Below, piece after piece: positions 1 to 56,978 of a stretch of DNA of 64,000 nucleotides. Both the position numbers and the translations under genes were made by a program. The notes under the pieces were generated by a model that had not been told where the DNA came from, made no database searches, and worked only from the letters and a program-made list of their open reading frames with translations. This stretch comes from Syncephalis fuscata S228 (Eukaryota > Fungi > Zoopagomycota): positions 62,001 to 126,000 of the forward strand of contig JAHLTZ010000003.1 in the NCBI GenBank assembly GCA_025786725.1, read 5' to 3'. Each line of letters starts with the position of its first letter. Position 1 is the first letter of the stretch.

Positions 1-844
1 ACATGGTGAACGCGCGACCATCCACGCGTGCACCAATCCACACACACTTTTCAACACGTGTGTTTTTTACTGCATGTCTAACCTGCAGAGCCTTCGTTCG
101 AATAGGCTATAGAAATGAAGTCAATATATATAAGTACATAAACAATAGTTATTGGTCTTTGCTATCGAAGTGTTATTTAGTTGGTTAGTACAGGTGAAGT
201 ACGCACTGTTTACCATTTATGCACAGTTGATATGTATAACAATCATGCCGAGCCTCTAGGGATGAATATATTGCTACATACCACAACATAATTATTTTTA
301 TTTAGCAAAGATAATGGACTATTGCTTCATACGGAGTACATCAGTGTTGTTTTATCAATGGTGTGTCCTATGATTACATTTTGGTGTATTTAACTTTTAT
401 TTACTTATTTACTTACTACACTCCTTACTTTCTTTCAGTAACCATTTAAGTTATAGTCCATTCTATCTTAGCATTATTCAATAGACGGTATCATAGAACG
501 TAGTATTAGTAAAATAGCGAGTAAAAGAAGAAGATTAACGCAATAGAATATAGTTTAGCGTATGACAAATATGTGTGGTCATAAAACATACTATCTGTAA
601 AGTAGCAAAACAATACCAAAATGTTATGAAAATAAAGCAATGTACTATTAATTTAAATAAATACGCGACTACATAACTGTGCTATATTTATAAAGCGATA
701 GGTTTATCTTTACCGACTTGGTGTCATGTTGTACATAAAGTGAATGTAAATTTGTAAAATATTACTTTTATTTTGTATATACATATGAAATTTATACAAA
801 TGTAAACAAATATAAAACAGTATGTTTTATAGATGTTACATGTT

Positions 845-1662
845 TTATATAAAGGTATTTATAATTCGTTTTACATTGTAACAAAATGACCAGATATTAA
901 AAATCGTATTAATTGGTTGATTTGAATGTTTCAACGCCTGACAATTCAACCTTGCGCCTGTGACTGTTCCGACAACAACAGGTTTGCTGCAGTCATATTT
1001 AGCTTTTATTGCTGATTGTGGTCGGTCTAGTAAATTCTCAGCTATTGCTGTAAAGATGGCGTCGGCTGGATAGGTAGTATTATCTATTATTATTTCAAAA
1101 AATGGACATCCCCATAGCGTTGCCAGTGCGATTCCGTCTTCTGTGGGAATAGTACGCTCGTTTACACTCTTTACCGTGCTGGTGCCAACCAATACAATAG
1201 GAATCTATATTGATGAGGTGTTAGTGATTGATCAAAGGCCATCTGCGTGTATAGAAAAACTTGCCTGCTGAAAGATATCCAGCTTATCAATTGCTTCTTT
1301 AAAAATGGACACCATTTCAAATGACTTTATATCTGTCGTTGAATACACGAGTATTGCCGCATCTCCCAAGGTAATGGGCAAGTAGGATAAAGCCGCATCC
1401 TGTTCGTTAAACGAAGCATCAACGACGTTGATGGCGCATTTGTAGTCCTTGATGATCAAGCGGCAATCATCTATTGTATTCAGATCGGACTCCAATGGAT
1501 CACTCAATGTTTGTCGTTGAAATTGACGACACTATAGAATGAGGCAGGTTAGAAGTGAATCTAATAGCCTACATACTAGACATGTATACTAACCAAACTT
1601 GTTTTGCCCGTATAGCGAGCGCCATAGATCGAAATACTAAATGATACACTTGGAAATAGCAT
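845..1662 (-). CDS. Highly divergent Ras-like small GTPase (3 exons), probable pseudo-GTPase
   Basis: Exon 1 reads MLFPSVSFSISIYGARYTGKTSL (P-loop). Exon 2 contains INVVDASF..GDAAILVYSTTDIKSF and exon 3 IPIVLVGT..LWGCPFFE. The second intron has a GCAAGT donor. Confidence 0.8.
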
Positions 1663-2118
1663 GGTACAATGATAACTACAGTAACGGTGACAAAAACAAA
1701 ACGTCGAAAAATCGGGCTAGCCTACACGCCATTTTGTTTAAATTCCAGTTTGAGCCGCAGCACGGCCAGTAAGCCGGTTTTTTGTCTGTGTTGTTACAAC
1801 AAGTATGCTTCCAGCACATGTGTAGGCCTTGACAGGTTATCAATAGATGTTTATGCCTGTATACGCAAATACTACGTGCGTACCATGTGCATGTCATGCT
1901 GGGCTTTTACTTTCATCCCGATGGTTCGTGTGGATTAGCTGAAAAGTGTGCCATCATTTAACTGCTTATTAGCACAATGGCTTAATCAATCACATGTACT
2001 ACCACTATTTCCATATTAGTAATATTTTCTTTATTGACTGAATACAGATTGAAACAAGTAGGATGCAAAGTAACATGGATATTTTGTCAGACTATGGCTA
2101 TAAACTATTTAGCATTAT

Positions 2119-2908
2119 TTAATTGGTTGCTGTTCCTCTCCAATGAGTAACTAGTTTGTGACATGCAGTAAAGTAACGCTGTGCTCGGGTTTTGAAGCGA
2201 CTTTTTTTCATGCGGAAGCGCATGCTGGTTGGTGAATATGACAGTGATGGCGGGTATGGCGCCCATGTTGTTATGCCTAGCGAGGTTTCCGTAAGTACCG
2301 TAATGGCATCCAAGATAGCCGATGAAGACTGCGTTGCTGCTGTTTCAAAAAACGGACAGTCCCATAGGGTAGCTTGTGCCATACCATCAGCGATAGGCAC
2401 TTTTCGATCTTGTTCTAAATCAGCTTTGGTGCCCATCAGCACAATAGGAATCTAATGGTGTTCGTGAATATGCTGGCACTTGTGAATGATGCGTCACAAG
2501 TAGTAGCTTACCTTTCCTGGCCAATACAATTGGCAATTGCATCGTAGTAAGCCTGAAGATCGTCGAGAGATTCGTGCGAAGTTATGTCGTAAACCAAAAT
2601 GACCGCATCTCCTATGGTTCGGTGTAGATTGGCCATTGCCTCGAATAAAGTAGGCGAGCCCGTATCCATAACACTAACAACCATCGGCTGACCTTCCGTC
2701 CACTGAACATGTCTATAGTATCCAGTGGCCGTGGTTGCCGTCCCCGCTCTAGACAACGTCATATCCAGGGGCAATTGACGTAGCTGAATAAAGTATATAT
2801 CTATATTAGCACCAATCTACTATTGTGTACTTTATTACTCACCAGTGATGTCTTACCAACACCACGTGCACCATAGACTGTTATATTCAAATACTTTTTC
2901 CTTAACAT
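2119..2908 (-). CDS. Divergent Ras/Rap-like small GTPase (3 exons), tandem paralogue of the previous gene
   Basis: Motifs are MLRKKYLNITVYGARGVGKTSL, VMDTGS, GDAVILVYDITSHESL, IPIVLMGTKADL and WDCPFFETAA. Intron positions match the neighbouring gene, and there is no CAAX. Confidence 0.85.
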
Positions 2909-3135
2909 GTCGACACACATTTAAACAGTCTATAAAACACAGAAATAAAACAAAAATAAGAAGACAAGCGTTTACGCGTCAAGATGCTATCTACTTTCTT
3001 ATGCACATAGTTGCACTGCACATCTTCCTAGTTCTACCGAGACATACATTGCTATTTTTGGTCATATTTTATTCTATTGGCGGCCACTCGGCCTCAAGAG
3101 CAACGGTAAACTCCGGACCGATGATTTCATAGCAG

Positions 3136-9383: not shown

Positions 9384-9771
9384 TGTAAAAAAGGTTGAAA
9401 TAAAAAAGGAGTTGCAGATAGCGCTTTTTCTAAATAAGAGACATAGCTGTCACAGAATTGCTATACTGTAATTGAGATGGAGTTTTAGTATCAGTACTAT
9501 TAGTTGCAGTTAAAAACACAGGTTTCAATTCAATTGTTATATTCTTTTTGTTAACTCTTTTTCTTTCTCGTTCAATGGATCATTATTAATTATATATACA
9601 AGGCGTAGTTTAAAGTAGATATGTTTGCAAGTATTTTATTTGACATTCAATAAACACTGTTGCTTATATACTAAATCTAATGCTTAAAAGTTTAGCTGTT
9701 AATTATAATATTATGTTCTGTGATAATGACATTTGTTTATGCATTAATATCCATCCTTCTTATTTTACCAG

Positions 9772-10020
9772 TGACATTGTTCTATGAATATATTTAGATT
9801 TATTGTTTGTTGTTTGTCATTTTTATTACACTCATTGTTCTACTGTTGACATTGTTCTGTGATATATTTAGATTTATTGTTTGTTGTTTGTCATTTTTAT
9901 TACATTCATTGTTCTACTGTTGACATTGTTCTATGAATATATTTAGATTTATTGTTTGTTGTTTGTCATTTTTATTACACTCATTGTTCTACTGTTGACA
10001 TTGTTCTATGAATATATTTA
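9772..10020. repeat. Minisatellite, ~75 bp unit, ~3.3 copies
   Basis: The unit TGACATTGTTCTATGAATATATTTAGATTTATTGTTTGTTGTTTGTCATTTTTATTACACTCATTGTTCTACTGT restarts at 9772, 9847, 9921 and 9996. Confidence 0.95.
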
Positions 10021-10429
10021 ATTTTATACTATTACTTTTTATTCTTTCTTTTATTCCACCACTTGAGTAATTTTCTTTCTGTATTTCAATTTGTTTCTAG
10101 TCTTTTTATGTACAATGCCCTTTAATTTATGGCTTGTATTATAATATTGTATATATCGTCTCTTTTATTAATTAAATAAAAATAACTTTTTTGTACATAT
10201 TGCTAATCTCGTTCAATGTTGCATATTTATTATAGTGTTTATCATTTTAATATATATTAGCTATACTTTATCTATAACCGTTGTTGGTATGGTTCTAGCT
10301 CTTTACTAATAAGAATCAACTTGTTGCACTTAGTTTGCTCACTGAGTTGTATCGGTAGAACAAATAATATGGATATGAACAAAGCTACGCTTTATTAAGA
10401 TTATGTCAATAGATTGATTTAAATAAATA

Positions 10430-10780
10430 ATGTAAAATACTATTTGATTTTTGAAACATTTGAGCCCGATTATTATTGTTGTTGGCCATGTGTAGAAAGA
10501 TTGATCGAATATCAATAGAAGCCATATGATTGCAATTCCATATCGTTCCGCAGTTGTTGTTATTCTATCTATGTACAGCATGGATTATTGCATCTTAATT
10601 GTCTCTTCTATTTTCTAATATTCTACTATTGCATTATGGGCATATTTGTGATGTAAAATCAATATTAATACAATTAGTATAAAAGTTGTTTATTAAACAG
10701 CCACTTTTCCTATAGCCAATCTGACTAAATAAATGGCATTTAAACAATTAATATCATAAATGAATATATATATATATATT
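10430..10780 (-). repeat. Dispersed repeat family A, copy 1 (~350 bp)
   Basis: The reverse complement aligns with 56010-56350 and 52331-52475. The shared core is AATGCCATTTATTTAGTCAGATTGGCTATAG..AAGTGGCTGTTTAATAAAC. Confidence 0.85.
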
Positions 10781-15915: not shown

Positions 15916-16056
15916 TGCACGACAGAAGATTTCCACACTGAGTCAGCCACGCATAGAACTAAGGCGAACTTTCTAAGCACTATTTCGCTTTGCTAACTGC
16001 ATGATCGCTTTAGTTCTATGAGTGGCTGACGCAGTGTGGAAATCTTCTGTCGTGCA
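15916..16056. repeat. Long inverted repeat / hairpin, 52 bp arms and 37 nt loop
   Basis: 15916-15967 is the reverse complement of 16005-16056 with 3 differences. Confidence 0.95.
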
Positions 16057-32027: not shown

Positions 32028-33691
32028 ATGAATATCAAACTATACAGTCAGCTAGCCCTGATTGCTACCGCTTTTGGTTTCCTATCCATTAGCTTTAGCT
32101 CTTTGCAAGTAGATGCATTAAAGGCTGAAAAACAGCCTCTTAACAAGATTCAATCCGATGATACATTGGATACATGGTATAGCGCAGTCGAGTTCATGCA
32201 ATTAGATGAACAACAAAGAGCAACTAACCAACCTCCTCCATTGCCGCCACGTAATACTGAACAGCTAAGAGCAACTAACCAACCTCCTCCATTGCCGCCA
32301 CGTAATAGCGAACAATTAAGATTAGCTAATCAACCTCCTCCATTGCCGCCACGTAATAGCGAACAATTAAGATTAGCTAATCAACCACCCCCATTGCCAC
32401 CACGTAATAACAACCTACAACAATCTATAACACAACTAAAAACAGTTAGAATTCCGCCTCCATTGCCACCACGTTCGAAACAGCAACAGCAAGAAGTACC
32501 TAATAGCTCTGAAACTTCATCTTTAATTGGATATGGAGTTCCACCATTAAAAGAAGAAGCAATTGATAAGCGCGATGCTTATGGAAAAAAGGGTCTTGTT
32601 ATGAAGAAATGGATTCCCACAAAGCCTTCGTTAACTGCAGGGTATTCAGAGTATAAGAAGGAAAAGGCCTTTTTAAAATGCTCCAGCAACAAGGAAAATT
32701 TCAATAAGGAAGACCGTGCATTTGCTGTAAGTAACTTATGCTATATTAACATTAATTACTCACTGTTGTTTGTTCAGTTAATAAGGATAGCTATGTCTAA
32801 TAAAAATAATCCTTTCTATGAAGGCAGTAAATATATCGTTTACAAAAAGGATGAATTCAAAGCGGGCAGGCACTATTGTTTAATTATTTCCGATGCTGGT
32901 GATTCAAACTTGTATGACTATATGTTAGAATTAACTGACGATGAGCGACGTGACCAAATGCCTAGGTTATTCAGACAACTTTTATATGGTAATTAAAATT
33001 ATTGTGCCATTAAGATTTACTAATATAATTTTATGTATTATTGTGCTAGCCACTGCATTCTTACACTCAGCCAAAGTTGCACACAATGATATTAAACCGC
33101 ATAGTAAGTAAATTGCCAAAAATGCTACGTACACTAACTTCAGCACAACATTAGATATCATGGTTAATACTAAAAACAAAAATAATATTATCTTCTCGCT
33201 TATTGACTACGACCTTGCGACTGAGCTGCAATTTGCGAATGGTCAAGTTGTACGTGTTGCAAGCGAGTCTGGTACGATTGGTTTTCATCCACCCGAAGCC
33301 TTTGGAAAGATTCCATTTGATTTACGCGTAGCAGATTCATGGAGATTAATAGCCACTATGTACTATTTTTACGGACGGGAGTCTAACTACAATCCTGACC
33401 ACATTATTGATCCAAATAGTGATACTGATCCAACGGTGCAATATCTATCCTATATGGAGAGGGTGTATCAGTCTGGTGTAAATCAACAAAGGATGGCGAA
33501 TTTAGCGCCAAAGACATCCGCAGCACTTCAGCTTATGGACAAAAATTCATTGAAGCTCTTTATGATAAATCAAGCATTTAGACCAGCACCTGCAGAGTAT
33601 ATTACAAAATATTTTATGAAGAACTATCAGGTAATTGCATTAGCGTGCTTATATAAACATTAGCTAAACTAAATATGTTGCTCAGGTTTAG
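32028..33691 (+). CDS. Secreted atypical protein kinase with N-terminal PPPLPPR tandem repeats (5 exons)
   Basis: It has a signal peptide and AFLKC (beta3 Lys), helix C EDRAF, HNDIKPHNIMV, LIDYDLA, GTIGFHPPE and ADSW. GT-AG introns start at ~32727, 32989, 33103 and 33631. Confidence 0.85.
32217..32475 (+). repeat. Coding tandem repeat, 51 nt / 17 aa unit x4 plus a partial fifth
   Basis: The units are RATNQPPPLPPRNTEQL, RATNQPPPLPPRNSEQL, RLANQPPPLPPRNSEQL, RLANQPPPLPPRNNNLQ and RIPPPLPPR. Confidence 0.95.
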
Positions 33692-44983: not shown

Positions 44984-47900
44984 CTAATATTTATTAATAA
45001 TAGTCTTTGGGCTATTTATTTACAAGTCAACACTATCTTTATTTAAAACCATATATACATTCATGTATATTGCACAACTCTACAAATACTTCTTCTTCCT
45101 CACAATTAGATGAATTGTTGTATTTAGTGTTACGTCCTTTAAAACAGGTACTTTTTAATACATATATTACAGATAGAACAGCATCGTTGTAAGTGATTGT
45201 ATAATAATATTTAAAACAATCCATAGAACTAGTATAATTAGAGATATCGAGTTACAATTACAATCATGGGCTCAATTAACTAAATACTGGTATCAATGGA
45301 ATGCATCACTATTTCACGTTAATTCACTGTCCTTTCCAGCAGATTCAACGAATAGTCCTAATTTACGTATTCGAGGATTAAAAGCCATTTCAACTTTATT
45401 ATTAACAACTACGCGGGATCATCCATTGGTAAGATGATGAATTAGTAGTGTGGTATATATTAATAGTATTTCTAAATATTTTATATACTTAGTGGTCTAG
45501 TTGGTTGGATATGGTTACAAGTAGCTTAGAAGATCCGATATCTGTTAGTATACGTGATACGGCATTAGGTATTATTGGACAGTTATGTTTAAGCTGCAAT
45601 GAAGCAACATTGTTTAAGCAGTGCTATCCACTTATACAAGCACGTGTTATGGTAAGTATTAGTATGGGTATACTTGCTTATTATTAACTATGCATCTAGG
45701 ATATTGGTGTATCAGTTAGAAAGCATGCCATTCGAATATTAAAAGATATTTACGATCAAGTTGATGATCAGGCAATTAAAATTGCTATTACGCAATGTTT
45801 ACTTGATAGAATAGAAGATGTAGATTCAACTATTATGGTAATTATGATTATAATAGTGCATTGGTAGTATTACTGATTACCATTGTATTTATATCATTAT
45901 TATAGAAATTAAGTCTACAACAATTACAATGGTTATGGCTGTCTGAACTATCGGGATCTACATTTACAATGATGCAACAACAACAACAACAGTATTCTGG
46001 ATACTATTCACTGCCTATTAAAGATTTGACAATTCTATCGGAACGCTTAACTATTCTGGGTCAAGTAATGGTTCAATGTCCTATTTCATATCGATATCGT
46101 GTATCAAAAGTATTTGAAAAGGTACATATATATATATATATTAAATATATTGTTTTTTATTTATTCAATAATTAGGCACTAGAAACTGCAACCAAAGGTA
46201 GAAACAAAAAGGAAAAGTTACAGCTATGTCAATGGTATATTACATGGTATATAGAACATTTATCAAGCACAGCAACAAATCATGAAGTATGTTAAATATA
46301 TTAGTAGTAATAATAATAATAATAATAGTTTAATCAATATAATACTATTAGCCAGTATCAACGGGATATGATCTTGTTTTGGTGCAATTAAGTCAAGTAG
46401 TACCGGAACTGTTCATCTATCATATACCAAGTTTATGTTTATACTTATCATCTGCAACTGCTCAAGTAGGTTGATGTAGTACTATACAATAATATTTACT
46501 AAAGACTATTGATATAGGAATATGATTTACTTGAATCGATTATTCGAATTATCCAATCAGTATTGCCATCAATACGACAACAAGTGGATCCAACGCTTAT
46601 GACAAAGTTACAATCAGATCTAATGAGCTTACTGTTAAAAGGATCTCAATCAGTAAGTAATATTAACAATTTATTAGATCAACTATTTATACATTATAGA
46701 TTATTGAATTAATTGTGCCATGTCTATGCATGATGGTGGCACGATTTACGCAACGATATGAACAAATAATACGATTGTGGATGGCATCTATTAGTTAGTA
46801 TTAACAACGTTAAATTAATATGTAGTAATGACTGCTAATTAACGAATAGAACGTATTAGTGAAGAAGAAGCAAGATATCAACAAACGGGTGCATTCCAGT
46901 CATTACGGAATGTTTTAAGACTATTACTCATCATTGGATTAGTATGTCTTCATTATCGCTATCGTAATAATGGACAGTTAATAGGTAAATAATAGTAGTT
47001 TGTAGATTATTACATTTAATAATATGTAAATTAATATTATTGCAAAATAGAAGCAGCAAATCAAGTAAGTTGTAATAAATGAATTGAAACTATTGGTACT
47101 TATATTTGGATTTGGATTTTATTAGCTTAAGTGAGACAACGGTCCGTAGGACCTAACCGCGCATTTGCAGCATTTGTCTGCCACCCCTAGGAGAATAGAC
47201 GGTTCATTTCGAACCTATCCGCGCGCAACGCAGAACCTGCCATCTACAACTGAAAACCGTTGGTGGCTCTCCTCACGTGTTGGAATATCGACCATTTCTT
47301 CTACGGAAGGATCCCATCACGCATTTCCTGAAAACAAGATTCGAACTAGGCGAACCAACATTTCCTACTTTAGGGAAGACGCGTTGACCGTTTAGGCCAC
47401 CACGCCTCCCTATTGGTACTTATATTTATTTTTAGTATAAGTCGTTAAGAGACAAAACATTCAATTTGGTGGTTCAGTTTATTGATCCACAGTATGATTC
47501 AATAATACAAACATATGCCCTTAAAAGTATGAGTAAGTATAGTGTACTAATTGGTAATAATGATACTAATTAAATATTAGGCTATTTATATCAAGCAAAT
47601 CCTGCCTGGTTAATGGATGAGAAGAGTACACAAATTATTCGTCGTATTTTGGCTATGGATAATGAACAAGTAATGGTACGACTACAATTAATGAAAGTAT
47701 TTGGTTCTCTATTACTACATGAATCATCAGCAACACCGGCAGATCAAGGTTAGTTACAATTTAAATGGTCATAATAGACAATAAATAACAAGATAATTAG
47801 AGGATAAAAATCAAGCTAATAGCCATAAGTTGAATGTAGAATTTATAGATGAAGGGTAATAAAATAGTAAATACAATTTCTACCACTAATATAACTACAA

Positions 47901-49536
47901 TGTTGATTAGATTAGGACCAGGATTGGTGCACACTTATATAGATTCAATACTTGAGACATCACTTAATCAGCACCCATTATTACACGAAACAGCATTTGA
48001 CGTGGTGCGATATGCACTACAACAAGGAGTTATACATCCGTTAAAAGTATGTATATGTGACATATTTATATAATAGAATGATTGCTTACATTGTATACAG
48101 TGTATGTCTGTTGTAGTGGCTGTAATGGCCAGTCCATACGAGCGTGTCCGTCAACGTGCCATCAGTTTGTTTGAAGCAATGGATAGTCGATATGCGTCAT
48201 TTCTCTATCAGAGAATGGCCGAATATCTTGATACACTATTTAATTACCGACACCAATGTTACTCGGCGCTAAAAAGAGAGCATTGTGAAATGATGGGCGT
48301 GTTTGGACCTGAAGAAGCCAACAGTGGACATGGACCAGAACCAATACTTGCCTCTTTGTATCGGTTTGTTCGATTGAAGAAGCCACGGTATACGCAATTT
48401 ATTAAAATAATGCTGCAACAGCAACAACGATTAAAGTTTGATAACAATAACTCAATTCCATTTAATATGGAACAAGTAAGTTTAAAGAAGAATATAAAGA
48501 ATGGGGTAATAGAATTTAAATCTAGATTAATTTGGACTATGGACAATTTGTGGCTATTCAATTGGCTACATTGGCTTATCAAACTGTCGATGAAGTAATA
48601 ACTGTGGTTAATACAATTAATGAATTAATAACCGAACAAGGAGCGGATCTTCTGGATCAATGTAGCCGTATTTTGGATAGAAATAAGGGTAGGCCATAGA
48701 TGAATATAAATATAATTGTGTAGATAATTTATAATTACGTAATTTATTAGTGATAAGTGAAGGAAATGCTAGAGCCTATTTGTGCTATAGTAGCATTCTT
48801 TATGCCAAAAAGTATATTTATACGCGATTTTGTTTAAAGTAAGCAGTAAAGAGTACTCTAAATAGCATACTAATGTGATTATAATAAGGGATAAATAACA
48901 TTTGAACAACTTTTACGTAATAGTCATCGTATGATTGCTCCATTTACATGGCATGGCCTTTTACTTGATTTTGATACTGATAAACAGAGACAACAGCAAG
49001 GATTGCAGGTAATTGATGAATAGTCTGTATTAATATTTGTCTATTATAACTAACTATGCATTGCAGTTTCAACAACTCATGGAACAAGATATTGGTTTAG
49101 CAGCAGGATTTAAACGTTTATCACTAATATCACAATCAAAAAAGCCGAGTAACGTGGTATCCACGAGTAAAAAGCAAGAGTCAGCAACTAAGGATGCAAT
49201 GGACATTGACAATGATAAAAAGAAGAAGAATCGACAAAAATCATCTTTTCGTCCATTTAATAAAATAGCAAGAAAAACAAGAGATTTATCACATTCTGAG
49301 ACCGAAGAAGGCGAAGATGGTACTGAGAAAGATGATAATACTGAGGAAGAAGACGAGGAAGAAGAAGAAGAAGAAGAAGAAGAAGAAGAAGAAGAAGAAG
49401 AAGATAGTGATAGCGATGTACCTATTGCTGAATTGATGAAATCAGCTCAAAAAGAAGATACTGATGCTGATAGTGATGTGATAGTGATGTACCTATTGCT
49501 GAATTGATGAAATCAGCTCAAAAGTCGCGTGTATAA
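42047..49536 (+). CDS. SCC2: Cohesin loader subunit Scc2/NIPBL (Mis4), many exons, several frameshifts
   Basis: Motifs include N-terminal ALSYSPLTT, LHLPEWPGA, SPNLRIRGLKAI, VSIRDTALGIIG, RVMDIGVSVRKHAIRILKDIY and ALQQGVIHPLKC, with an acidic tail. Confidence 0.9.
47090..47427 (-). mobile_element. tRNA-derived SINE, ~300 bp, with 18 bp target-site duplication, antisense in an Scc2 intron
   Basis: The TSD CTATTGGTACTTATATTT occurs at 47090-47107 and 47410-47427. The minus strand has an A box TGGCCTAAACGG, a B box AGTTCGAATC, a 3' hairpin GGTCC-TAC-GGACC and a (TCCAAA)n tail. A second copy lies at 55679-55980. Confidence 0.88.
49358..49403 (+). repeat. (GAA)n microsatellite encoding poly-Glu
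   Basis: An uninterrupted GAA run lies in the last Scc2 exon. Confidence 0.95.
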
Positions 49537-51028: not shown

Positions 51029-52330
51029 AGTTGCTATAGTATGTTAAACTGCTAAAGGAAAGTAATGATGCTTATTCAACTAATAAATTAATAGTCTATT
51101 TATACCAATATGACATTGTTACTGTTTTGACATTCCGGACAGGGTTTTGTGAAAGTGTGACCAAGAAATATACCATGCGATCGACCACAAGATTAATATA
51201 CCTATCGAATATTAGTACCGATTACTAGTAACAAATGCCTATTACGACAATATGACGAGTAGCTACTGGTTAGTTGTAAGCATATGAGCAGCCACCTGAA
51301 CTAATATGCCGCGCTAATAATGAAATACTACAAGGCATTCAAGTTCTATTATTAGTTATGTTTACTATATAATGATAGCTTTATTCAATATCAATAAAGA
51401 AATAATCAAGTTTCTAGTCCAACATTATTTCTACTTAGTGTCATACAAGTTATTCAGTTTATTATAGTTAAACTGTGGTAATTAATGACCAATAAGGAAT
51501 AATTTTATTATAAAAGCAATACAACCAAACAACACATTGTATTCTGAGCGTTAAGGTAAGCCTTAATAAGCATCAGAAATTAACGTTATAGGATAGCGAC
51601 AGGATAAGGTGTTGCTTGGTCATCTAAGTTGCGATTTCTAAAACTAGAAGCGTAACAACATGACAAATTAAATAATTTAATAACGTGTATAATTGCTTTA
51701 TTGAACAAGGTGTCAATGATGATACCGCAACGGATAATCTATCTATTAAGTTTCTTGTACGGTAATTATGGCCATTGCCTGAAATGTAAACTAACGTTTA
51801 TTGCATGCCTAAATCGATGTTCTTTGTGTTTTATATTTATTTATAATGTAAATATAATTATAATCTAAAACTATAAAAGTATTGTATTTTTATACCGTGC
51901 CCATGCCGTTTTTAATACAATATAGGATATTTGGACCATATGTTATAACCTTTATTATATTACTATTTTTTTAACCATACGTTAATATATGATGCAGTAG
52001 TTTTTTACATTTGAGAAAAACCGCTTTAATATTAGACAACGGGACTCTGTGATACATATGCAATATACAAGTTATTTTATAAGTCATGTCTTGCAGCCCA
52101 TGACAGTCGTGCGCATGAACGATTTTCAATTAATAAATAGTGTATAATTTGAGAAGTTATTTACTTTGACTTCCACATTTTTATTTATCCATTTCACCTC
52201 TCAACACTTTTAAATACAATTAAACACTATTCATTACTATAAAATGTATAATATTACATCCAACATTAATCAACTCATGTGTAATTATCAGTATAATAAT
52301 GTAATTAATTAGTTATTTTTATTATTGCTT

Positions 52331-52475
52331 AATATATATACATTGTCATTATGATATTAATTGTTCAAAATGTCATTTATTTAGACAGATTGGCTATAGG
52401 GAAAGTGGCTGTTTAATAAACAACTTTTATACTAATTATATTAAACTTACATCACAAACACGCCAAAATGCACGT
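52331..52475 (+). repeat. Dispersed repeat family A, copy 2 (partial)
   Basis: It matches the first ~140 bp of 56010-56350 and the reverse complement of 10640-10780. Confidence 0.85.
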
Positions 52476-55678: not shown

Positions 55679-55980
55679 TTTGAATTTGAATTTGAATCTA
55701 TTAGCTTGAGACAACGGTTTGTAGGACCTAGCCGCGCATTTACAGCATTTGCCTGCCACTTATAAAAATATAAACGGTTCTTTTTTGAACCTATCCGTAC
55801 GCAACGCAGAACCTGCCATCTACAACGGAAACTGTTGGTGGCTCTCCTCACATACTGTAATATTGATTATTTTCTTACGAAGGATTCTTTTACGCATTTC
55901 CTAAAAACAAGATTCAAACTAGGCAAACCAACTTTTTTTTTAAGAGAAAACGTGTTGATGTTTAGACCACCACGACTCCC
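55679..55980 (-). mobile_element. Older, degenerate copy of the same SINE
   Basis: It is colinear with 47108-47410 (GCAACGCAGAACCTGCCATCTACAAC is identical) and has an (ATTCAA)3 tail. The B box is mutated to AGTTTGAATC, and no TSD is recognisable. Confidence 0.85.
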
Positions 55981-56009: not shown

Positions 56010-56350
56010 TATATATATAAATATTGTTCTTATGATATTAATTTTAAATGCCATTTATTTAGTCAGATTGGCTATAGAGAAGTGGCTGTTTAATAAACGA
56101 CATTTATAATAATTATATTAATCTTGATCTTACATCACAAATATGCCCAATGCAATCGTAGAAATTAGAAAATAAAAGAAACCATTCAGATGCAATAATC
56201 CACACTGTACATAGATGCAATAACAATTAATGTGCAATGATATAAAATCGTAATCATATGGTTTCTATTAATATTTGATCAATATTTCTACACATGGATA
56301 ATAATAATAATCGGCCTCGTGGATTTCAAAGTAGTCAAATAGTATGTTAA
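56010..56350 (+). repeat. Dispersed repeat family A, copy 3
   Basis: It is colinear with the reverse complement of 10430-10780. Confidence 0.85.
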
Positions 56351-56978
56351 ATTCTTTATTTGAATGTTTAATATTATTACTAATACAGTGTTCTATTACA
56401 TTCAATTATATTATATGGAAATGCTAATGTTATTACATTACATTAATATTTATTGTAAATGATCATTTAAACACAAATCAATTAAGCGAATAATTATGGT
56501 CGATGGCGTAGAAAGATTTACTGTCCCAAGGGGAATCAAGTAAATTTTTTACGGACATTAACCTGTTTGTCATTGGTGCACTGTCCTTTTTAATACTTTT
56601 TTGTTGTTAATTCACTTTGACAATTACCTACTAAATAGTTTAATCTATTTAATACACCCAACATATCTAGCATTGTTTTTTAACATCAAGTATTGGTCTA
56701 CAAATGTATTATTATTGATACTATTATAAATATAGCTGAGTAGTTTTGGAATTTTTTTTTGTAATGGCACTGAAAATAGCCACGCTGCTTAACATTCCAT
56801 GTAGTCGTAATATGCAGCTAAACTGATTTATTTGAGAATGCATGTGGGTTAGCCTTTGTAGCTGCATCTACTTTATGTACCTATTTAATTCATTGTTTTA
56901 GTAAATTCGGATATATCGCTTTTTACTAGCTTGTTTATAACTATTTACTGTAATTCTTGTATATGTAATTACGTAACT

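Follow-up and report, generated by a model that had tools for sequence, protein, structure and literature searches.

A Recently Active tRNA-Type SINE Family and Its Likely Partner LINE in the Zoopagomycete Fungus Syncephalis fuscata

Introduction

One intron of the Scc2 gene of Syncephalis fuscata, a member of the Zoopagomycota that parasitises other fungi, contains a compact element bounded by direct repeats, which raises the questions of what this element is, how it came to be there, and whether its relatives are still moving. An earlier note on a 64,000-nucleotide stretch of this genome (hereafter "the window"; positions given without a contig or locus name refer to it) had read the element as a young SINE of tRNA descent. 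We have compared the element with its relatives throughout the genome assembly, searched for the LINE that might mobilise it, and analysed the sites at which members of the family have inserted.

Several fungal SINEs provide a context for this locus. Mg-SINE, found with MGL/MGR583 in Magnaporthe, and SINE2-1_BG, found with Tad1-24_BG in Blumeria, are tRNA-derived fungal SINEs with a partner LINE (PMC3747384). Mg-SINE is 472 bp long and present in ~100 copies, and Foxy of Fusarium oxysporum (which is reported to be active), AfuSINE2 of Aspergillus fumigatus, and Egr1/EGH24 of Erysiphe are also fungal SINEs (PMC5063351). In stringent-type SINE/LINE pairs, of which the eel SINE and UnaL2 are an example, the two partners have a 3′ stem-loop in common, and a short tandem tail has been linked to template slippage (PMC3747384). 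There are also precedents for target-specific insertion, namely crocodilian SINEU-3 in Mariner-N4_AMi and Xenopus Tx1 in Tx1D, and a family is counted as target specific if more than 20% of its flanks belong to one target (PMC4494074). Our literature searches turned up no description of a SINE from Syncephalis or from the Zoopagomycota.

Results

An Antisense Element in an Scc2 Intron

The host intron (47065–47435, plus strand) is 371 nt long. The earlier note had estimated that ~51 nt would remain once the element and one copy of the flanking repeat were taken out, and exactly 51 nt remain, from the GT at 47065 to the AG at 47435. By local translation, the exons on the two sides of the intron, one of which lies upstream and is 14 nt long (47051–47064, plus strand), join in one open frame that continues into the next Scc2 exon, and there is no open frame across the junction if the 14-nt exon is omitted. 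Two exons beyond that next exon match Nipped-B_C when the exons are searched separately, which identifies the gene as Scc2/NIPBL.

Inspection of the sequence and comparison of copies place the element at 47410–47108 on the minus strand. It is a full-length copy of 303 nt that belongs to the youngest subfamily, and it has no substitutions relative to most other young copies. Its GC content is 50%, compared with 28% in the flanks, and the GC-rich element as a whole is predicted to be structured (fold z −2.0). The exact 18-nt duplication that had been described is present (47090–47107 and 47410–47427), and because the G at 47410 closes the repeat and, in all other copies, also opens the element, the true target site duplication (TSD) is 17 or 18 nt long.

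Each of the parts that the earlier note had listed (a tRNA-type head with A and B boxes, a body, a terminal stem-loop, a repeat tail, and the flanking duplication) can be found in the element, and all are described here on the minus strand. The first 37 nt (47374–47410) form a 5′ hairpin that is predicted to be a rod and not a cloverleaf (−23.2 kcal/mol, z −5.5 relative to shuffled sequences). The Pol III A box at nt 12–23 (47388–47399) is a full match to TRGYYNARNNGG, and the B box at nt 65–73 (47338–47346) is a full match to GTTCRANYC. These are followed by a body (nt 79–223; 47188–47332), for which Rfam gave no match that would indicate its origin, and then by a 3′ domain that begins at nt 224 (47127–47187) and is predicted to form a closed stem with two hairpins, although the z value of this fold is only −1.2. 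A 28-nt stretch (47130–47157), which includes a GGTCC-TAC-GGACC stem-loop (47153–47141), matches the 3′ region of a candidate partner LINE. The tail consists of two AAATCC units (47108–47119), and other copies have one to four units of AAATCC, AAATTC, AAATC, or GAATCC. A repeat tail is thus present, but the last AAAT of the tail as originally quoted belongs to the TSD copy on the 3′ side of the element (47090–47107), whose minus strand starts with the same four letters as the tail unit, an instance of junction microhomology.

The element is antisense to Scc2 and was inserted 8 nt ahead of the end of the intron. As the TSD copy on the 5′ side of the element (47410–47427) repeats the region ahead of the acceptor, the insertion has left the 3′ splice site unaltered and in its original context, and this is probably why the insertion is tolerated. 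The antisense 3′ end of the SINE also provides an AG, 5 nt, and then a GTGAGA donor (47124–47136); these signals could define a cryptic 5-nt micro-exon in Scc2, inclusion of which would shift the frame. We found no general preference for introns, in that only two of 17 insertion sites outside the hotspot described below look antisense-intronic by a crude rule.

The Head Contains Pol III Promoter Boxes

The A and B boxes occurred together at tRNA-like spacing in only two of 20,000 dinucleotide shuffles, and at the level of sequence a type-2 Pol III promoter is present. ARAGORN called no tRNA in the head, and Rfam gave no match to RF00005 at E values up to 10. When we compared the head with 13 distinct host tRNAs, the best local matches were to tRNA-Trp(CCA) (z 4.9) and tRNA-Arg(CCT) (z 4.7). 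In older copies, a stem of 4–5 bp carries a 7-nt loop that reads AAG at the anticodon position, which hints at a parent tRNA of the Leu type. The predicted rod formed by nt 1–37 may explain the loss of the cloverleaf. Two intact boxes and a modest resemblance to host tRNAs are the basis for the proposal that the element is tRNA derived; neither of the search programs supports it, and we regard a tRNA origin of the head as likely. A run of at least five T residues is required for termination by fungal Pol III; the longest T runs in the SINE are two runs of T4.

A Very Young Family with Empty Sites

One protein encoded in the window is 100% identical to a protein of S. fuscata, which agrees with the earlier note's placement of the host among early-diverging fungi. 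We searched the S. fuscata assembly, which comprises 29.36 Mb in 371 contigs. BLAST gave at least 40 matches to the SINE genome-wide (40 listed of 67 candidates), and a 17-nt pattern from the 3′ stem-loop gave 67 matches on many contigs, compared with none for the reversed control. Four of the 67 stem-loop matches are LINE copies and two are a LINE-like variant, which leaves ~60 SINE-type loci, some of them duplicated. The many copies with distinct TSDs that had been anticipated from the window were thus recovered, but the suggestion of a high copy number has to be replaced by a moderate one (~60 loci in 29.4 Mb). In the analyses that follow, true duplicates (L004/L007, L011/L019, L022/L024, L027/L028, L033/L034, L036/L039, and L037/L038) were counted once.

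Over 288 nt, 17 of the 20 young full-length copies are free of substitutions, and older layers of the family are found at ~96% and 82%–86% identity. The TSDs of 26 events are 15–23 nt long, with a median of 19. Each independent insertion has a TSD of its own, and most TSDs start with AAAT, as does the tail unit, although some older copies have no clear TSD. At the 5′ junction, full-length copies carry 0–3 extra bases, mostly G. In one case (L009:1458–1500), ~19 extra bases lie between a 23-nt TSD and the 5′ end of the SINE, possibly as a result of a template switch or 5′ transduction.

A second copy in the window, which had been reported near 55679, was found at 55980–55688 (minus strand). It is an older full-length copy with ~80% identity and no recognisable TSD, and its tail runs on to ~55679. 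CpG-focused decay of this copy was not supported by the counts (11 of 40 CpG positions compared with 24 of 105 other C/G positions). Its end at 55980 abuts a dispersed AT-rich repeat (56027–56364). An old, diverged relative of the SINE at L010:765–1215 has an A-box-like head, the same body, and an 18-nt unit that occurs ~7 times inside it; ARAGORN and Rfam found nothing meaningful in this relative.

We looked for preinsertion sites of seven loci other than the focal one, using patterns composed of the two flanks separated by a gap of one TSD length. Exact empty sites with a single TSD were present elsewhere in the assembly for five of the seven loci, and this flank-pattern search of the assembly found none for L031 and L014. 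The empty sites of L002 and L013, two loci that are close to the ends of contigs C103 and C92 and whose flanks are unrelated to the repeat R described below, are on other contigs, which suggests allelic presence/absence. The empty twins of L017, L021, and L012 lie in sister repeat arms and may be allelic or paralogous. The exact single-TSD empty sites show directly that the duplication arises on insertion and that members of the family were mobile very recently. Many young copies are situated less than ~0.5 kb from contig ends (on C103, C92, C238, C252, C169, C210, and C60), and these copies, together with the empty sites on other contigs (two tested), suggest that haplotype bubbles in the assembly open at SINE insertions.

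Near-identical copies, distinct TSDs, and empty sites bear out the earlier view that the family was recently active. The family has the features by which SINEs are recognised (short, noncoding, interspersed copies; variable TSDs; a simple-repeat tail; 5′ truncation with intact 3′ ends; and an internal Pol III promoter sequence), and we conclude that S. fuscata contains a real and very young SINE family.

A LINE with the Stem-Loop of the SINE

The assembly contains seven long matches to reverse transcriptase (RT), which fall into two families. In all seven, there is an AP-endonuclease match upstream and an RNase H match downstream, a domain order that is the same as in Tad1 and I-group LINEs, with the caveat that the endonuclease match is weak. 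One of the families has four copies (C35, ~505–512 kb; C57, ~215–223 kb; C223, ~694–702 kb; and C324, ~70–77 kb), in which the E values are ~3e-4 for the endonuclease and ~1e-20 for RNase H. Their open frames are 1672–2168 aa long, and the frame of 2168 aa is open in two of the four. Each of the four has the stem-loop of the SINE 2265–2276 nt beyond its RT match and on the same strand; with up to two mismatches allowed, a match of this kind would arise by chance within 3 kb with a probability of ~2e-4. The match between LINE and SINE extends to 25 of 28 nt (the LINE being known here from coordinates and one 28-nt pattern match), and older SINE copies carry the C of the LINE at one of the three positions that differ. 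No match to nt 224–243 of the SINE was found in the LINE, and the tail pattern AATYYRAAT, searched for as one exact pattern, was absent within 32 nt of the LINE stem-loop, which indicates that the stretch in common is short.

The second LINE family (C2:269–273 kb, C24:315–320 kb, and C177:5–10 kb) also encodes an endonuclease, RT, and RNase H, in a frame of 1708 aa, and does not have the stem-loop motif. Elements with a zf-RVT domain are present on C151 and C214; the LINE on C35, C57, C223, and C324 gave no zf-RVT match. Judging by the stretch that they have in common, this four-copy LINE is likely to be the partner of the SINE, and by analogy the arrangement would be the one described for stringent-type pairs (PMC3747384).

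Short Forms of the SINE

The 5′ ends of SINE copies cluster at nt 1–3, nt 25–34, and nt 221–226. L023, L022/L024, and L025 account for three events with starts at nt 25–34, and L029 also starts there. The cluster at nt 221–226, where the predicted 3′ domain begins, comprises ~10 independent short insertions; among the matches listed, almost none start between nt 35 and nt 220. Both truncation points are at the 3′ side of predicted helices, and arrest of RT is therefore the simplest reading.

Insertions Are Concentrated at One Site in a Foldback Repeat

At sites outside the hotspot, the TSD starts with a consensus of approximately AAT/AAAT, and ATT or TTT follows the end of the TSD in 12 of 17 cases, compared with a background of 27% (P 2e-4). 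The hotspot lies in a repeat, which we call R, that is a foldback or MITE-like element of 0.8–1.1 kb with long inverted arms and inner sub-repeats, present at many loci (for example L010:1880–2900 and C354:18900–19900). The arms are 83 nt long and 95% complementary in L010, and an arm pattern gave 365 matches compared with none for a control, so the assembly contains at least 365 arms. Some R arms bracket inverted segments of 4–8 kb (C355 and C357).

Nine of the 34 independent insertions for which we had the sequence in hand are at position 77–80 of the R arm, all in one orientation, and the figure becomes 13 of 41 when four events known from coordinates only are added. A model based on the short motif, which was built from 15 sites, predicts that ~0.1%–4% of insertions would be at this site (assuming 365–3000 arms), or 15% at the most generous setting. 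In total, ~15 of the 34 insertions are in or beside R. Within R, the arm site has ~5% of the motif weight yet received nine of the ~15 insertions (P ~1e-8, or 0.004 if a 25% share is assumed); this was a post hoc test, and part of the enrichment may come from survival in gene-poor regions. We ruled out the explanation that the R-site copies are duplicates of one insertion, because their TSD pairs and SINE lengths differ. TSD pairs agree within each locus and differ between loci, which shows that the insertions were separate events. The share of insertions in one target repeat (9/34 or 13/41) exceeds the 20% that serves as a working definition of target specificity (PMC4494074), and a real preference for the R arm site, beyond the short motif, is the reading that we consider probable.

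Discussion

A Model for Mobilisation

It is very probable that the element in Scc2 belongs to a recently and probably still active family of nonautonomous tRNA-type SINEs that are made by Pol III and mobilised by a co-resident LINE. In the model that we propose, Pol III would transcribe the SINE from its internal A and B boxes and read through the two T4 runs, and the protein of the co-resident LINE would bind the stem-loop that the two RNAs have in common, as the stringent-type model predicts. The microhomology at the junctions suggests that the LINE endonuclease nicks AT-rich DNA at approximately 5′-ATTT/ATT-3′; the freed ATTT end could then pair with AAAU of the hexamer tail and prime reverse transcription, during which template slippage would give rise to one to four tail units. 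A second nick 15–23 nt away, usually ahead of ATT or TTT, would account for the TSDs, which the empty sites also document. The 5′ end is joined with 0–3 extra G residues or is short, at nt 25–34 (inside the 5′ hairpin) or at nt 221–226 (immediately past the next folded domain, on its 3′ side), probably because RT is arrested. The quarter to a third of insertions that occupy the R arm site may mean that the LINE endonuclease has a broader preference for certain sequences or structures.

Alternative Explanations

The alternatives to this model differ greatly in plausibility. Although the element is GC rich and structured, its identification as a MITE, solo LTR, or multicopy structural RNA gene is scarcely conceivable. 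A MITE and a solo LTR were ruled out by the absence of terminal inverted repeats and of TG...CA ends with a short fixed TSD, and a single-locus structural RNA was ruled out by the many copies, the distinct TSDs, and the empty sites; long TSDs of variable length, 5′ truncation with intact 3′ ends, and a variable tail also argue for a SINE. It is improbable that the SINE is real but took its head from another Pol III RNA, or that the head is tRNA-like only by convergence. Such an origin would fit with the predicted rod, the lack of an RF00005 match, an anticodon-arm register that is one base off, and the fact that none of the 13 host tRNAs compared aligns well over the whole head, but both boxes match fully at tRNA spacing, local matches to tRNA-Trp(CCA) and tRNA-Arg(CCT) have z values of ~4.8, and the older copies retain the stem and the 7-nt loop with AAG at the anticodon position. 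We are similarly disinclined to believe that a different LINE (the family on C2, C24, and C177 or the zf-RVT elements on C151 and C214) mobilises the SINE and that the 28-nt match is a relic. Other LINE families are indeed co-resident, and the search for the tail pattern in the LINE that bears the stem-loop was negative; the motif is nevertheless confined to the C35/C57/C223/C324 family, where it occupies the position expected for a 3′ UTR, and two of the four copies of this LINE keep their 2168-aa frame open.

Two further alternatives, which concern parts of the model, deserve more weight. The 80-nt short copies could derive from a discrete RNA that is cut at ~nt 223, or from a master copy that was itself short, instead of from arrest of RT. 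The numbers of short insertions at nt 221–226 and the near absence of starts at nt 35–220 would suit a discrete RNA of this kind, as would the facts that the short and full forms both start in a G run and that the short piece is predicted to fold as a closed domain. We nevertheless think this explanation unlikely: the short copies start directly 3′ of a predicted helix that ends at nt 222, the remaining truncations fall within the 5′ hairpin, on its 3′ arm, where RT arrest would be expected to leave them, and the short copies carry variants of several subfamilies. In addition, intermediate lengths may be missed among the matches listed, Rfam identified no ribozyme around the boundary at nt 224, and by inspection we found no fit to an HDV or hammerhead ribozyme there. 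There is a somewhat greater, but still minor, chance that the hotspot in R does not reflect targeting and arose instead from survival in gene-poor, R-rich islands combined with a good short motif in some arms. Of the 34 insertions, ~15 are in or beside R; the AAAT motif is present in six of the nine filled arms and absent from most empty arms, and the second motif, at the end of the TSD (12 of 17 compared with 27%), also occurs in R arms and was absent from the model. However, survival in R-rich islands leaves the arm site overfilled within R itself, at least two filled arms (L029 and L034) do not have the motif and were still hit at the same position, the TSD pairs point to separate events, and the second motif, with its 2- to 3-fold effect, is insufficient.

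Relation to Known SINE/LINE Pairs

tRNA-type fungal SINEs with LINE partners are already known, and the two such pairs that we found in the literature are both from ascomycetes. Mg-SINE with MGL and SINE2-1_BG with Tad1 resemble the Syncephalis pair in combining a tRNA-type fungal SINE with a partner LINE; they differ, on a comparison of descriptions, in that their hosts are Ascomycota, whereas the Syncephalis SINE belongs to the Zoopagomycota and its partner LINE has one long frame. Foxy, AfuSINE2, and Egr1/EGH24 are likewise all from Dikarya, and the TSDs of AfuSINE2 are 4–14 bp long, compared with 15–23 nt in the Syncephalis SINE. The eel SINE and UnaL2 provide a parallel for the sharing of a 3′ stem-loop and for the short tandem tail, but the partner in Syncephalis carries RNase H, the stretch in common has been seen over only 28 nt, and the tail unit is AAATCC/AAATTC.

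As regards targeting, SINEU-3 and Tx1 resemble the Syncephalis SINE in preferring a nonautonomous repeat of DNA-transposon type, the share in Syncephalis being 26%–32%. Those systems are found in animals and have snRNA heads and Tx1-clade partners, with a specificity of 90% for SINEU-3, whereas the Syncephalis SINE has a tRNA-type head and a partial preference, and its partner carries RNase H and gave no match to zf-RVT. What is new here, then, is a likely partner LINE with a common 3′ end, an insertion preference for one R arm site, and the short insertions from nt 221–226. A bolder proposal, which we offer tentatively and hold to be more doubtful than not, is that a LINE with an AP endonuclease and RNase H, belonging to neither the Tx1 nor the R1 clade, acquired real sequence-specific targeting of foldback arms independently in a compact fungal genome and mobilises both the SINE and its 80-nt mini form; this would give fungi their first SINE/LINE pair with a preferred target, and would be the first of its kind from beyond the Dikarya.

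Fungi have yielded few well-supported SINEs, and Syncephalis adds what appears to be a young, intact SINE/LINE pair from the Zoopagomycota, although the general understanding of SINEs is unchanged by this family. As empty and filled sites coexist in one assembly, the 28-nt recognition signal, the nick site, and the priming microhomology are directly testable, and the insertions are ready for use as presence/absence markers for Syncephalis. If the targeting is real, the preference for the R site would supply a fungal example of the idea, reviewed elsewhere (PMC6719617), that insertions in compact genomes are directed to safe havens.

Other Features of the Window

The window contains several other repeats. 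The dispersed AT-rich repeat that lies next to the old SINE copy is also found at 10199–10744 and 52303–52448, occurs in both orientations, and is beside R in several loci too. A tandem array with a unit of ~74 nt occupies 9760–10056, and an inverted repeat of 52 nt (94% complementary, with a 37-nt spacer) is present at 15916–16056. At the end of Scc2, 46 nt are duplicated nearly exactly at a spacing of 71 nt (49407–49523). An ORF at 32028–33663 has a start that resembles a signal peptide, followed by proline-rich repeats of 17 aa and then by a kinase-like part.
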